64,000 nt of DNA, from assembly GCA_020891255.1 (NCBI GenBank), contig BQFW01000011.1, positions 620,001 through 684,000 on the forward strand. The letters run 5' to 3'. The stretch comes from Entomortierella parvispora E1425 (lineage: Eukaryota; Fungi; Mortierellomycota). Both the position numbers and the translations under genes were made by a program. Of this stretch, positions 55,252 to 61,831 are shown in pieces. Every line of letters starts with the position of its first letter. The first letter of the stretch is position 1. A model generated the notes under the pieces. That model was not told where the DNA came from. It was given only the letters and a program-made list of their open reading frames with translations, and made no database searches.

Positions 55252-56410
55252 TCACTGCGTAGACGTGATAAGTCTGATGAACTTCTTCAAATTGATAACA
55301 TCTTCCAGGTGATCAGCGATACCCTCGAAAAAAAGGTATCCAAATTTGAAAGGTTGATGTGTACCATCACATCGTCCGTGTCGGCGACTCGGTCGGTTTT
55401 GACATGAGTACTGAGTTGCCGCTGCAGACCCCAGGAATTTCAATGTGAATACAAAGGATGCCCCTGAGGTTGATTGGAGTGCCCGAATCTACAAATTCCT
55501 GTCGAATACCTGCATTTCCGTCCGTCTCGTTGATTCCATCCTTCTTTAAGAAACAGCCTCGAATGTCATTGGAAGTCTTGTTAGAAAGAGCCGTATCTTC
55601 CCTTGTGTTGTCACTGTAGAGCTTAATTGCGAGAGAGCCAGCGTAGTGGTTGTTAGAGGAGAACCAGACTCCATCTGGACGAGTGCCAAAATTAGCAACG
55701 AGCATCTGATTCGGAGGACAATCTTTGAGGAAGGCAAGATCCGCTCGGAGACCAGTCTCTGAATACCCACATCCGTTGGCTGTGTTGATCGCATCAATCT
55801 GGAGGATCAGGCCATTGCGCCAGCCAGGTAGAGTAACACCTTGAAGGAAAGGAAGGTCAACAACACGCTAACCATTGAAGCGCTGAAGACAACGACGAAC
55901 AAGAGGTCCAAACGCATCTCCTTTTGAGGTCGATCCACGTCCGTAGTTGGTGACAATCCTGAATATCTAATCCAAGTACTCCAAGAATGCTGGATCCTTG
56001 CCAGAAGCCTTTAGCTCTATCACCACCGCCTCAATGACCATAGGCTCATAATCAAGTGGATACCGTCAGGATGTGGCCGCAGCTTGCACAGGGCCTTATC
56101 CACAAAGTCAGCCTGATCCTTTCCTGCAAACGATATTTTGCCGCCATGGAGATGAGGGTTTGGTGAGACAATTGACGACGTCAACAACAAATCGGGCTCG
56201 TCTTGCCAGCTTGCGGAGCTTCGGTTCAGGGATGACACAATCCTCCATATCAACCAAATCCGAGAGCATCCTTGAGACAGCATCTTTGCAAAAGCGAGGG
56301 AAATCGTTGATTTTGGAGTCGTTGGTTTGCTTGGCAACAGCAGAATACACATGATCTGCATTCTGCAGTGAGAGAGCCGTTCCAAGGATCACTAACGTGG
56401 CTTGAAAGTC
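55252..56410 (-). pseudogene. Crinkler (CRN)-like ATPase + restriction-endonuclease-fold effector, 5'-truncated and frameshifted
   Basis: QATLVILGTALSLQNADHVYSAVAK, STSKGDAFGPLVRRCLQRFN, DLPFLQGVTLPGWRNGL, RPDGVWFSSNNHYAGSLAIKLYS, DIRGCFLKKDG, GILCIHIEIPG and FFEGIADHLEDVINLKKFIR are motifs I recall from Mortierella CRN-like REase proteins; several frame changes. Confidence 0.7.
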
Positions 56411-56520
56411 CCGCAGACCCGCAAAAACACCTATAAAAAAAGTTGCCTCCCGTGCTAGAGCCATGTAAAGTGTTTCACCCTATCTCTCGGAGGAACTTTT
56501 CGGCAATAAAAATCTCCTGG
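56411..56520 (+). repeat. Direct repeat A (second copy at ~59269-59390)
   Basis: gcagacccgcaaaaacac...ttgcc.cccgtgctagagcc.t.taaagtg.tt...gagga.c.ttttcgg occurs in both places. Confidence 0.8.
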
Positions 56521-56720
56521 ATTTTTCAATTGTCCAATCCCTCGCTTTATCATCCCTTTCCTCTTTCCATCCCTTACAATAATTTCTAGCATCCTTAGAT
56601 CCTTTGGGAACACATCTTTTCAGATTTGTTTGGCGTCCTCTTTTTTTTTTCTTTCTGTGTGCCCTTGATATTCTCATCCCCCTGATCTCCCATACAGTGC
56701 CTTGATCTTTTTTTTTTCAG

Positions 56721-56839
56721 CTTGCCCTTGATTTTTGCTTGCCCTTGATTTTTGCCTGCCCTTGATATTTGCTTGCCCTTGATATTCGTTATTCCTTGAT
56801 ATTTGTTATCCCTTGATATTTGCTTTCCCTTGATTTTGA
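56721..56839 (+). repeat. 17-bp minisatellite, 7 copies (consensus CTTGCCCTTGATWTTTG)
   Basis: Directly visible tandem units with progressive divergence. Confidence 0.9.
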
Positions 56840-57267
56840 TATTTTGCCTGCCATCTGGATCATGTTTTTATCTTTGATTTTTTCAATGTATCCCTACTCA
56901 AATGTCACAGGTAAAAATTGCCGACTGCCTCCTCTCGGCATGCCCTCTCTCACCCCTGGTGGAACGGCGACCCCTTTGTTTAATCTTGTCTCACATCTGG
57001 CCTCTCCCCATGATGTTGAGCTTTTCTTCTCGTTATACTGCATCCTGGATCCTTTGATTTTCATCATCTTGCTCACATATAAAAAGATGCTATTCCACCC
57101 GCCACTGTTGATATCTTCACCAATACTCCATTCGCGAATTCGGCCTCAATATGGTATGATACAGCACTCTAAACTCTGCCAACTCTCTTTTTCTATTGAC
57201 CGCTTAATTAACTCATGTTCACATCACTGCCATTTCCCTATTGCTGTTCTCCTAGAAACGTAACACT

Positions 57268-57879
57268 ATGAGCGCATGCATGAAACTTTCGTTAATTATC
57301 AGCTTGACCCTCTTCATGTTTCCAACCATTGGTGCAAGTGCTGGCACTGGTGCTGATGTTTTGAATGAGTTTGGTCATGAAGCTAGCCCGCACCCCACCA
57401 CCTGTGTTGATGCCAATCGTGATGGCATCTGTGACCGCCTTCGTCCTCCACGTCCCTGTGTTGATGCCAATCATGATGGCATCTGTGACCGCCCTCCCCC
57501 TCGTCCCTGTGTTGATGCCAATCATGATGGCATCTGTGACCGCCCTCCCCCTCGTCCCTGTGTTGATGCCAATCGTGATGGCATCTGTGACCGCCTTCGT
57601 CCTCCACGTCCCTGTGTTGATGCCAATCATGATGGCATCTGCGACCGCCGCCCCCCTCGTCCACCTCCCCGTCCTGAATGTGCGAATGAGGCTGGTCGTG
57701 AAGCTCGTCGTAAAGCTGACGATGCAAAACGTAGGCTTGATGCATTACGAGATGCTACCGCAATGGCCAGAGCTGATCCTCATCATGTCTATACGGCTGA
57801 TAGCCCCGTGCATTTTATCAAGGATGCCAAAGCGGAGTTCATCAGATGGAATATGCAAGCGAAGAGCCAGGGATGCTGA
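57268..57879 (+). CDS. Secreted protein with five CVDAN[RH]DGICDR repeats and a helical Cys-bounded C-terminal domain
   Basis: Intact 203-aa intronless ORF with signal-peptide-like MKLSLIISLTLFMFPTIGASA. Repeat starts are 57403, 57457, 57508, 57559 and 57613 (54/51/51/54 nt). Confidence 0.8.
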   Translation: MSACMKLSLIISLTLFMFPTIGASAGTGADVLNEFGHEASPHPTTCVDANRDGICDRLRPPRPCVDANHDGICDRPPPRPCVDANHDGICDRPPPRPCVDANRDGICDRLRPPRPCVDANHDGICDRRPPRPPPRPECANEAGREARRKADDAKRRLDALRDATAMARADPHHVYTADSPVHFIKDAKAEFIRWNMQAKSQGC

Positions 57880-59084
57880 CCCTATTAGTATTAATAGTAG
57901 TGCGGTCCCGATCCACATCAATCAGAGCACATAGAAAAATATTTTCAGTATCATTTCCTATTTGTCTAGTTTCAGTTTTTTGGTTTCGTATATGAAGGGA
58001 CCAAATCCAGTTTGCTCCTGGTTGCCTTTGAGCCCTTCAGAACGCAAATACACATCCCCACTTTACCTGCCTGATATCCCCTTTGTAGTAGCAGCAAGCT
58101 CGACGCCTTAATTCCGATTGCTGAGACTATTAGAATCTAGTAAGAACCCCTCTCTTACCTTGGATATCACAGACCCATTGCATTCTGTTGATCGACCTTG
58201 TACACTGGATCTTACCTGTCCTCGACAAGTTCCGTCAAGAACCTCGACCAACAAGTTCTCCGTTGTCCTTGCTCACTTACGAGGTACCAACAATGTCTTG
58301 TTCTTTTGAGTGGACTTTTTTTTTTTTTTTTTTTTTTTTACGATCTTAGCATCCCATCCTGAGGCCTTAACTGGTGCCTGGGAATCTTCCTTATCTTATC
58401 GTCGCCCTCCCTCGAGTCTCTCCTGAACCCTCAGTTAGTCGGCCTTGTCCTCTTTCCCGGACAGAATACCTTTAGCCCTGCTCTTACTGATTAGATTCCA
58501 TATCCTCTCTTGTTGCTGATCCTAGTTAGTATAGTCACCTGGAGCTGATCCTTGCGGCACGAGATCAACGTCCCTGCCATATGTAAACAGCGAGCCTTGT
58601 TCGTTATTATTCTTTTCGTTATCATTTTCACCTCCAGCCTTTGCTGACGTTAGACTATGTATACTTACTTTAGACAACATCACAACAGTACGGACAGGGT
58701 CTCGAGAACAGTCCTGACCCAGGAAAAATCTAAGACGTAAAAGGACCCGATCTTCCTAGCCATAATCCTGTAGTAGCATACAGACAAGTCAATCTCAATC
58801 AAAAACAACTTCTGTTACTAGATCAGTCCAGGAAAGCGTCACAAACCGCCCTCGGTCTAGATCGGACTTGACGCGTCTCATTGATTCCACGTCCCAAGTT
58901 GCTGGCCCATTTTCTTTTGTTTGCGGCCTCCTGATACCACCTACTACCACCTCCATGTAGCCAAGTTTGAAAATCCATGATGATCCACCCTCGAAACCCC
59001 CTGAAAACAAAACGCTCAGCATTATGAATATCACTTGACACAACTTTGCACACAAACTAGCAAACTAGCAAATACACACACCAA

Positions 59085-59240
59085 CAACTTTTCGCGCCTT
59101 GCCACCAACCGTTCGCGACTTGCCACCAACTTTTCGCGTCGTTGCGTCGTTGCGCAGCCGCCACTAACCTCCCGTGCCTTGCCACCAAGCTCCCGCGCCG
59201 TTGCACAGTGGCCGCCAATTTTTCGCGTCTTGCCACCGAC
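59085..59240 (+). repeat. Degenerate short tandem motif TTTTCGCGYCTTGCCACCAA
   Basis: About 5-6 imperfect copies immediately before direct repeat A copy 2. Confidence 0.6.
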
Positions 59241-59268
59241 CAGGATGGTCTATCTGGCTAGAGAAGCC

Positions 59269-59975
59269 ATGCAGACCCGCAAAAACACTAGAGAAAAAAA
59301 AAAGAGTTGCCCCCCCGTGCTAGAGCCCTATAAAGTGCTTGACCCCAGCACTTGGAGGACCTTTTCGGTGAAAAATTCAAGATCCTGGCACCTTGGTACC
59401 TTTGTTCTAGGTCGTCCTCAGCTGTATCTTTCTGATGATGCCATCGGGAACCCATTATCTGGCCTAGATCCGGGGGCATCATGAGATTAAGTTGATCCCA
59501 GGTGGTCCCCCGTGCTAGAGCCATGTAAACCACCCGGTCAGAAAAAAAAAAGTAGCCACCCCGTGCCAGAGCCCTGTAAATTTTGACCCATCACTTGGGC
59601 TTTTTCGGTGGCAAAGTCAAGACCTGGCGCCCTGGCTCTTTGGATCTAGCTTGTCCTCGGGTGATACCTTCGAATTATGCCATCGTGAGCCCGGGATCCT
59701 AGTCATGATCTCGAGCATCATCACTTCGAATTTTGTCTCAAGTCCCAATGTTGAATGTTGACCCCTCACTTGGAGCACTTTATTGGTGGCAAGGTCAAGA
59801 GTTGGGGCTTTGGTACCTTGGATCTAGGTTGTCCACAGCTGCAGCTTTCGGATGATGCCGTTGGGAGCCGAGGATCTTGGTCATAATCTCGAGCATCATC
59901 ACCTCAAAGTCGGTCCCAAGTGGTCGCCTGTGCTAGAGAAATGTAAACCCATCTGCCCGCCAGCCAAAAAAAAAA
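59269..59975 (+). repeat. Direct repeat A copy 2 plus three diverged ~180-240 bp tandem units
   Basis: The pattern TGACCC..CACTTGG...TTTTCGGTG..AA..TCAAGA..TGG...GGATCTAG.T.GTCC.C.G...ATGCC.T.G...TC.CGAGCATCATCAC recurs three times. The CCGTGCTAGAG..TGTAAA motif occurs at ~59314, 59510, 59561 and 59929. Confidence 0.75.
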
Positions 59976-60349
59976 TGCTGATGTCGACTTCTTCTTACTG
60001 ACTGAGTGACCAGGGGTCTTCTTTTTTTTCCTTGCCCAACATGGACCTACCACCTTTGGGCATGGAATAGCTTCAACATTATTATTGCTTTGACTTGTTT
60101 GTAGCACCTCCGCTGGATATTATTGTGTTTATTTGCCACCTTCACCACCTTTCTTCAGCTCACTGATACTTATTTCACTATGACGACAATAGTTGAATTC
60201 AAGTTGGTAAAGAAGCACCAACGCAGCAAAGGCCCAACGTCCCCTGGCCAATGGTGCGTTGAGGGATCGGTCAATACATTAAATCAGTGAAAAAAGATAC
60301 AAAGTAGAAGGAGGGAAAGAATGTGGAATGCCAACGGCCAACTGGTGCT

Positions 60350-61831
60350 TTAGGGGTAGTAGCGGAAGCTGGGGTGCATATCATACAGGCCATCCTTGGC
60401 TGCATCCACCATCATCTGGCGCGTCATCTGCTGGGGTGGGCCATACTGCTCGTCACGCTTGGCGTTGATGCGGGAGATGTAGTACGATAGCAAGGCAGCA
60501 ACAAGCGCCGTGAATAGGATGAACGCGAGACAGATGGCGTGGCCCATGACGAAGCGCGGTGCTGTGTTGGTCGGGTAAATCTGGCCGCCGGCCATCGCCA
60601 GCGCCTGTGCGAACATGTTCAGCATAGCGAGCCCCACCGCGCGCTTCGTGTGCCCGATGTTGTTGTTAGATACCCACGCCAGCGTCAGCGGGATGATCGG
60701 GTATATCCCGCATGCCACGAGAAAGGCGCCCACGTAGTTCACGCCCATAAGGCCGTTCGAGATCAGCAGGATGTATCCCAGCGCCGCTATCAGCCCAGAG
60801 CCCGCGATAAACATGCCGCGGTTGCGCATGCGGTCCGACAGCCGGCACTGAGCGAACACTGACACTGCAGCACAGATGTAGGGTGGCACCGACAACAGCT
60901 GTGCATTCAGCGGAGTCACGCCAAACTCAGAAATGATCGTGGGCAGGAACGCCGTGTACGATGACAGGCAGATGTTCATGCCAATGTACAGCAGTACGCA
61001 AGCCCAGTTCTTGGTATCCTTGAATGCTGCAACCAGCTGCGACATGTCAAACACGTTGTCGTCATGGTTAAACTCGGAGCGGTAGCGCTCGATCGCAAGC
61101 TGCTTCTCCTCAGGCGTGAGTAGACGCGTGGACGCCTGTTCAGGCATGTTGGGCAGTACAATGACGGTGAGCAAACCAAAGAAGATGGTGAGGCAGCCCT
61201 CGATCAAGAAGATGATCTGCCACGGCTGGAAGTGAGGGTTGTCCGCCATGTTCTTCATGATGCCGTACGAAATGAGACCACCAAAGGCACCAGCGACCGT
61301 GGACGAACCGATAAACAGCGCCACGCGCCACGCCAGTTCGTCGCGCAGGTACCACCAGGACAGCAGAAGCGGCGCGCCTGGCCCGATACCCGCCTCGAAG
61401 ATGCCCATGAAGAAACGGCACGCCAGCAGGCCGCTGTAATTGGTAGTGGCAGCCATGCTCGCCGCGCACACGCCCCACATCACCATGGTGAATGAAATCC
61501 AGCGCGAGGGCAACACCCGCTTCAGCATGAGGTTGCTCGGCACCTGTGAGATCGTGTATCCCGCGTAGAACATGGACAGCACGTTGAAATACTGGCTGTC
61601 TGAGATATGCGTGCCCTTCTCGAGGCCCGCTAGGCGTGCATTACCAATATTCCCACGGTCGAGCGACGAGAACATGTACAGAATGGACACCCACGGCACG
61701 AGGCGCAGGTCCATCTTGAGCATCAGGCTACGGCGGATCTTCTCCAGCTCGGTGGGGTCTTCCGGAAGCACTACATCGTCGGCCACGATGTCGTGAGACT
61801 TCTCCTTGTCATGCTGCGGTGAACCCGACAT
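60350..61831 (-). CDS. MFS transporter, anion:cation symporter (allantoate/nicotinate permease, Dal5/Tna1-like) family; intronless and GC-rich
   Basis: KMDLRLVP, LDRGNIGNARLAGL, QVPSNLMLKR, RFFMGIFEAG, WWYLRDELAWRVALF, WQIIFLIEG, WVSNNNIGHTKRAVG and HPSFRY; 493 aa. Confidence 0.92.
   Translation of the reverse strand: MSGSPQHDKEKSHDIVADDVVLPEDPTELEKIRRSLMLKMDLRLVPWVSILYMFSSLDRGNIGNARLAGLEKGTHISDSQYFNVLSMFYAGYTISQVPSNLMLKRVLPSRWISFTMVMWGVCAASMAATTNYSGLLACRFFMGIFEAGIGPGAPLLLSWWYLRDELAWRVALFIGSSTVAGAFGGLISYGIMKNMADNPHFQPWQIIFLIEGCLTIFFGLLTVIVLPNMPEQASTRLLTPEEKQLAIERYRSEFNHDDNVFDMSQLVAAFKDTKNWACVLLYIGMNICLSSYTAFLPTIISEFGVTPLNAQLLSVPPYICAAVSVFAQCRLSDRMRNRGMFIAGSGLIAALGYILLISNGLMGVNYVGAFLVACGIYPIIPLTLAWVSNNNIGHTKRAVGLAMLNMFAQALAMAGGQIYPTNTAPRFVMGHAICLAFILFTALVAALLSYYISRINAKRDEQYGPPQQMTRQMMVDAAKDGLYDMHPSFRYYP

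Follow-up and report, generated by a model that had tools for sequence, protein, structure and literature searches.

The open reading frame at positions 57268–57879 (+ strand) of the window (the whole analyzed stretch of 64,000 nucleotides from contig BQFW01000011.1 of Entomortierella parvispora E1425) belongs to an intact, single-copy gene encoding a protein of three parts, namely, a signal peptide, a repeat-filled spacer and a helical C-terminal end, which is probably exported. According to sequence comparisons, conservation of the gene lies in the folded C-terminal module and not in the repeats, and this end-piece defines a small, undescribed fungal family (the 'ARADP' helical hairpin). The repeat unit itself belongs, by its sequence, to a catalogued, uncharacterized prokaryotic repeat, and outside this fungus it was found here only in bacteria and archaea.

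Gene model, repeat array and surroundings

The originally called ORF of 203 aa is open and intact, and its frame extends upstream to position 57256, where the preceding codon is TAG; consequently, the initiator methionine must come from an upstream exon. A 208-aa database protein, P0001, equals methionine plus the translation of 57256–57876. This protein was used as deposited as the query for searches, and the second exon was compared against it. The features of the gene were as follows:

57078–57085 (+): TATA-like box TATAAAAA, read from the sequence; putative promoter element
57151–57153 (+): proposed start codon; the first coding exon is ATG alone, with the donor GTATGA directly after it
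57154–57255 (+): proposed 102-nt intron, GTATGA...CTCCTAG, deduced from the 208-aa model
57256–57879 (+): open frame of 207 aa plus the stop codon, containing the ORF 57268–57879
57256–57879 (+): second exon with the remaining coding sequence and the stop codon, based on the open frame and the match to P0001
57256–57342 (+): predicted signal peptide, residues 2–30 of P0001, likely cleavage ASA/G (hydropathy heuristic)
57403–57669 (+): five tandem units CVDAN[R/H]DGICDR, each with a Pro/Arg linker (54, 51, 51, 54 and 57 nt)
57679–57876 (+): C-terminal Cys-to-Cys helical-hairpin module of 66 aa, based on alignments and AlphaFold2 (AF2)

The TATA-like box TATAAAAA precedes the proposed start codon by 66 nt, and the single ATG between the box and position 57151 abuts the box. 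The N-terminal residues beyond the originally called ORF are backed by the start of the Linnemannia gamsii orthologue, MKCNIMSTCMKL versus MKRNTMSACMKL here; the signal-peptide region is 44% identical to the N-terminus of that orthologue. The original prediction of a signal-like N-terminus agrees with the hydropathy heuristic, which gave a core LSLIISLTLFM (11-residue window, mean Kyte–Doolittle hydropathy 2.42) followed by an A-S-A/G site with small residues at −3 and −1. The gene was also rightly described as intact. Other fungi contain significant relatives of its end-piece, so that it is a real gene and not a chance ORF. It is present as a single copy in the 38.9-Mb genome, and the repeat motif is confined to the same place, since D-x-[DN]-x-D-G-x-C-D occurs in these five positions only.

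The array was detected by TRF with a period of 51 nt and 5.0 copies (57401–57662, 90% matches, score 407). The five CVDAN[R/H]DGICDR units, starting at ORF residues 46, 64, 81, 98 and 116, follow the order A (18 aa), B (17 aa), B, A, B' (19 aa), and their linkers are RLRPPRP, RPPPRP and RRPPRPPPRPE, all as originally described. The Dx[DN]xDG calcium-loop core, the two bracketing cysteines per unit and the lack of the EF-hand acid at position 12 were likewise confirmed. Units 1 and 4 are identical (54/54 nt), as are units 2 and 3 (51/51 nt), which means that the array is young or homogenized; the cores of the five units differ by one R/H change (unit position 6) and one synonymous change, with all motif residues kept. 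The mature protein contains 12 cysteines, an even number, with two per unit and two in the C-terminal module. The AF2 model of the whole protein, run without an alignment, was poor (pLDDT 59, about 58 across the repeats). Searches of the whole protein against local Pfam, NCBIfam and PDB sequences gave nothing above threshold, and the exact loop of the unit was found in none of the solved structures searched.

The gene had been placed between direct repeats, with the suggestion that it is mobile cargo. Such repeats exist (77% identity), but they are fragments of a dispersed family, and the repeats around the gene were as follows:

56398–56503 (+): upstream direct repeat, a fragment of a dispersed family, 77% identical to the downstream one
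57892–58700 (strand unassigned): solo copy of a dispersed element of about 0.8 kb, starting 13 nt after the stop codon; sole copy in the window
59255–59368 (+): downstream direct repeat, inside a longer copy of the same dispersed family (about 59068–59976)

The suggestion of mobile cargo did not hold, given that the gene, with its motif, is found at one genomic place only and that the repeats on either side of it are old pieces of dispersed families. The family at 59068–59976, the second dispersed family, contains an internal tandem duplication of about 175 nt (59579–59743 and 59754–59921) and is enriched near contig ends (C11:1–10679, C16, C18 and C5:1.87–1.90 Mb); it may be subtelomere-associated. 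The 0.8-kb element has at least 40 scored copies elsewhere in the genome (74–84% identity). On 14 other contigs it forms one tight cluster each, often as head-to-head inverted pairs (e.g., G000:C9:266883–297382, C12:996113–1052852, C6:417561–469324 and C10:761654–763779), and it could be linked to centromeres or form the arms of a TIR transposon. The ...G-C-stop ending of the protein is common to its family relatives, so the insertion of this element did not truncate the protein, although it may have taken the place of the 3' untranslated region. A 17-nt tandem array of GCTTGCCCTTGATTTTT and its variants (about 8–11 copies, 56640–56838) precedes the proposed start by about 310 nt. The nearest recognizable neighbor is an MFS_1 transporter gene (60350–61831, − strand; intact 493-codon ORF, E-value = 3.7e-33).

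Fungal relatives of the C-terminal module and prokaryotic counterparts of the repeat unit

The helical domain bounded by two cysteines was described correctly: the last 66 aa have Cys at both ends, and two helices were predicted there by AlphaFold2. In an exhaustive phmmer search, 85 proteins were found at E-values up to 0.001, about 80 of which matched via the repeats, whereas P0009, P0010, P0013 and P0015 matched residues 134–208 (E-values from 7e-30 to 5e-13). Three of these relatives of the module come from Hohenbuehelia grisea (Agaricales, Pleurotaceae), and the fourth comes from L. gamsii (Mortierellaceae). The eleven aligned modules have Cys-to-Cys spans of about 63–81 aa and share the core motif RL.AL..A.A.ARADP..V...SP.H.I, which is present in E. 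parvispora. The five terminal modules (from five proteins) have 24 invariant columns and about 50% identity, and all invariant residues are kept here; the E. parvispora module is nevertheless the most divergent of the eleven, departing from the consensus with SPVH for SPYH and KDAK for GAE. Internal modules are longer at both ends together, and terminal ones are shorter at both ends; since the N- and C-terminal extensions are gained and lost together, the two cysteines are expected to form a staple with the ends side by side. The AF2 model built on the module alignment contained helices at 4–32 and 44–63 (pLDDT 87.3, pTM 0.70).

The module occurs once in the E. parvispora genome, and the L. 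gamsii protein P0015 matches this gene alone; the two genes are reciprocal best matches and hence orthologues. The signal peptide and the module of P0015 correspond to those of the E. parvispora protein, but its spacer of 42 residues is different and lacks the repeat unit. The H. grisea proteins (P0009, P0010 and P0013) are secreted and carry two to four hairpin modules in tandem, and their spacers are Arg/Gly/Asp/Pro-rich with poly-Asp runs and end in PPPRP-x-Cys, as does the linker here; D.D.DG strings are already present in one of them. The module is distributed patchily, being found in Mortierellaceae and one basidiomycete only. No relative of the module was found among Pfam families and PDB sequences or in a metagenome scan with the module alignment, and word-index searches with the C-terminal region and with the L. 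gamsii orthologue each returned only the query protein itself. Kinship with ZneB or other membrane-fusion-protein hairpins was not accepted, as the PDB fold search and the Atlas structure neighbors gave generic alpha-hairpins only (best Foldseek E-value = 0.42).

The precomputed database annotation of P0001 is PF27309.1. This family is MJ0753_N according to the Atlas (Pfam 38.1), in which an adjacent cluster carries TSP3_bac; literature searches on PF27309 and MJ0753 found no papers. The word-index search with the protein also returned bacterial metagenome proteins labelled PF27309. The approximately 80 prokaryotic representatives carry tandem [FYWC]xDx[DN]x[DN]GxCD, a pattern that all five fungal units fit, and the fungal units scored 33–34 bits each against a profile of 260 distinct prokaryotic units, which had been collected with the fungal protein as the query. 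At position −2, F was counted in 110, C in 75, Y in 38 and W in 8 of these 260 units. V, A, N and I of the fungal unit are each the majority residue at their variable positions, and its Cys at position −2 is the second most common residue there. The cysteine of the motif is invariant in 260 of 260 units, most of which have no partner Cys.

Two kinds of prokaryotic unit were distinguished. Small secreted proteins of gut bacteria and anaerobes (e.g., the Ruminococcus MAG locus L002) are filled with aromatic-first units that have one Cys. Cys-first units with two Cys were found in the soil-bacterial proteins P0005, P0006 and P0008, in one Nanoarchaeota protein and in large Ig/PKD/cadherin surface proteins, the last of which match TSP_3 and Notch LNR weakly. 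In P0005, 14 consecutive residues are identical to fungal unit 1. The bacterial units align with calmodulin Ca2+ loops, but not significantly. Three bacterial loci with mini-repeat proteins were examined (L005:992–4159, L003:3968–5742 and L002:1209–2382). One of the proteins is encoded between a MerR-family regulator and YnfA with a CDF cation-efflux pump; the genes of the two others immediately precede that of an ECF sigma factor, and in one of these two cases an RsgI-like anti-sigma factor and His-rich tails were noted as well. Such gene contexts hint at a metal-related role for the uncharacterized PF27309 family.

With regard to the origin of the unit, it is possible, though we hold this only tentatively, that a loop of 12–14 residues was captured from a soil bacterium into the fungal spacer, recoded to fungal codons and amplified to five units. 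Convergence of an Asp/Arg/Pro-rich spacer onto the same 14 residues is equally allowed. Capture is suggested by the 14-residue identity with P0005, by the Pfam label, and by the fact that neither the rest of the genome nor the orthologue contains the motif. Convergence is suggested by the Asp-rich spacers of the family, by the D.D.DG strings of H. grisea and by the PPPRP-Cys junction native to the family. The bacterial contig L008 was the sole match in a metagenome scan for the exact unit, and its codons are unlike the fungal ones: the bacterial and fungal unit DNA differ at 9 of 36 positions (about 75% nucleotide identity), 8 of which are synonymous, a difference that was read from one bacterial unit and speaks for convergence. 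For Dx[DN]xDG loops in general, repeated convergence in Asp-rich regions has been favored, and transplantation was raised and set aside (Rigden et al. 2011, PMC3123361). Among the genomes searched for a donor, 301 Acidobacteriota genomes gave two weak N-terminal matches to P0005 only, and the four genomes behind loci L002 and L005–L007 gave no match.

Possible role of the array and alternative explanations

The reading that we favor, at roughly even confidence, is that the array is a recently amplified filling of a variable spacer, forming a cation-binding rigid stalk that carries the conserved stapled hairpin. The layout of the family is a signal peptide, then a variable Asp/Arg/Gly/Pro-rich spacer, then the stapled hairpin, and in E. 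parvispora the five mini-loops would fill this spacer. Cysteines of proteins passing through the fungal ER are normally oxidized, and in the secretory pathway each unit would most likely close into a 10-residue disulfide ring (Cys1–Cys10); together with the staple between the first and last residues of the module, six disulfides would be expected in the mature protein. In each ring, one Ca2+ would be coordinated by Asp3, Asn5, Asp7 and Asp11 together with a backbone carbonyl. The Pro/Arg linkers of this protein cannot be helical, and they would be stiff, polyproline-type segments that keep the units apart. The 66-residue hairpin would be the working end and may bind a partner. The D-N-D-G ligand set is that of the classic hard-cation Ca2+ loop, which is found in many unrelated extracellular proteins (PMC3123361). 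Several points count against the stalk. The acidic ligand that EF-hands have at position 12 is missing from the unit. In most prokaryotic members, which come from anaerobes, each unit has a single Cys, so that the conserved Cys must have a role other than a disulfide there. The MerR/CDF/YnfA metal-efflux cluster around one bacterial member would point to softer metals, and the repeat element abutting the stop codon might reflect weakened constraint or expression. The poor AF2 model across the repeats, the lack of this exact loop among the solved structures searched and the departures of the module from its consensus also weigh against the stalk.

The same cysteines raise the alternative that the paired Cys, together with Asp and the His/Arg position, chelate a soft metal (Zn, Cu, Cd or similar) for extracellular buffering or scavenging. 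This would accord with the invariance of Cys in the 260 prokaryotic units despite the usual lack of a partner, with the R/H alternation at unit position 6, and with the neighborhoods of two bacterial members, the one between the MerR-type regulator and the YnfA and CDF efflux genes and the other with His-rich tails adjoining the ECF sigma/anti-sigma pair. However, the metal-efflux context is a single locus, and the oxidation expected in the fungal ER, the even Cys count and the fixed spacing of the two-Cys units all speak for disulfides, as the ligand set speaks for Ca2+ (PMC3123361); we consider soft-metal binding unlikely, though a live alternative. It is likewise improbable that the gene is decaying or was never expressed, with the array being neutral slippage in a low-complexity spacer at a locus overrun by repeats. 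Such decay could be concealed by the very recent expansion, with units identical in DNA and the ORF intact for that reason, and it would suit the dispersed element 13 nt past the stop, the other repeat fragments that flank the gene, the divergence of the module, the greatest among the eleven aligned, and the finding of only two Mortierellaceae proteins of the family among billions. Against it, the frame is open over 207 codons, the start, splice signals and TATA-like box are intact, the ...G-C-stop ending is native, and the invariant residues of the module are all kept. The units themselves have lost no motif residue in any of the five, their cores differing only by the R/H change and the one synonymous change.

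Less probable still is the release of the five units as disulfide-cyclized peptides by a Pro- or Arg-directed protease, not KEX2, with the hairpin as a follower or recognition domain. The precursor originally envisaged had the layout of fungal RiPP or KEX2-processed repeat precursors, and KEPs have been reported in early-diverging fungi (PMC6339444). By the heuristic, the protein has a signal peptide, and its five near-identical cores, which make up about 29% of it, exceed the KEP thresholds of three repeats and 15% coverage; each core has Pro before it and Arg after it. In the published KEP pipeline, proteins are cut at KR, RR or KK, and three or more similar fragments are required (PMC6339444). 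The same cut in silico found dibasic sites at residues 132, 152, 159 and 160 only and left all five units on one fragment of 103 aa, which contradicts processing by KEX2; there is no KR, RR or KK between the units, and the sole RR near the array is followed by Pro. Excision by another protease is opposed by the L. gamsii orthologue, which keeps the hairpin without the cores, by the H. grisea relatives, which repeat the hairpin instead, and by the prokaryotic unit, which sits inside large surface proteins and not in precursors. No RiPP-type tailoring enzyme (UstYa/DUF3328, prolyl oligopeptidase or methyltransferase) was recognized in the seven long ORFs at 41.5–62 kb of the window, where spliced genes could escape such a survey, and the MFS transporter was the only neighbor recognized. 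The locus does not provide evidence of a new class of peptide natural products from fungi.

If the stalk reading is true, a catalogued, unstudied prokaryotic extracellular repeat would be at work in a fungal protein, and the locus would be a test case for the question of whether the spread of short calcium loops is due to transfer or to repeated emergence. It would also add a small, undescribed secreted-protein module, present in two Mortierellaceae and, in tandem, in one basidiomycete. The five-unit array is short and self-contained.

Comparison with known repeat and calcium-loop families

Like KEPs (PMC6339444), the protein has a signal peptide and, behind it, three or more short repeats that are compact and nearly identical; it differs from them in the lack of dibasic sites between the repeats, in the folded conserved domain after the array and in having an orthologue without repeats. 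With the Dx[DN]xDG class, including the EF-hand (PMC3123361), the unit shares the core D-x-N-x-D-G with Asp at position 9. Unlike the EF-hand, which has Ile, Val or Leu at position 8, the unit has Cys there; there is also no helix-loop-helix and no acid at position 12, and a probable disulfide brackets the loop. In the local Pfam search, EF-hand_5 reached 22 bits against a cut-off of 25.9 bits, over profile positions 7–14 only, and a faint match to Notch LNR was obtained. Assignment to the EF-hand was rejected on the basis of this sub-threshold, loop-only match, of Pro, Arg or Leu at position 12 and of the Pro-rich flanks.

The thrombospondin type-3 repeats (TSP_3, PF02412) and TSP3_bac (PF18884) gave no match to the protein at E-values up to 10. 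The likeness to them lies in extracellular, tandem, disulfide-bearing DxDxDG[IV]xD loops without flanking helices; the difference is that TSP3 has DGxxDxCD and paired loops, whereas in the fungal unit Cys directly follows Gly-Ile (DGICD) and there is one loop per unit. The Excalibur extracellular calcium-binding domain is secreted and Cys-bracketed, with the motif DxDxDGxxCE. The fungal unit is similar to it in the Cys-bracketed DxDxDG loop with Cys just after Gly, but its Cys is one residue closer (DGxC instead of DGxxC) and is followed by Asp instead of Glu; no Excalibur Pfam match was obtained in the protein.

The prokaryotic PF27309-type proteins differ from the E. parvispora protein in their linkers, which are rich in Gly, Asn and Cys and not in Pro and Arg, and in their hosts; the fungal helical module was present on none of the prokaryotic members found here. 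Nevertheless, the two share the same 12-residue motif, repeated in tandem units behind a signal peptide, and the two-Cys subclass to which the fungal units correspond exists among the prokaryotic proteins as well.
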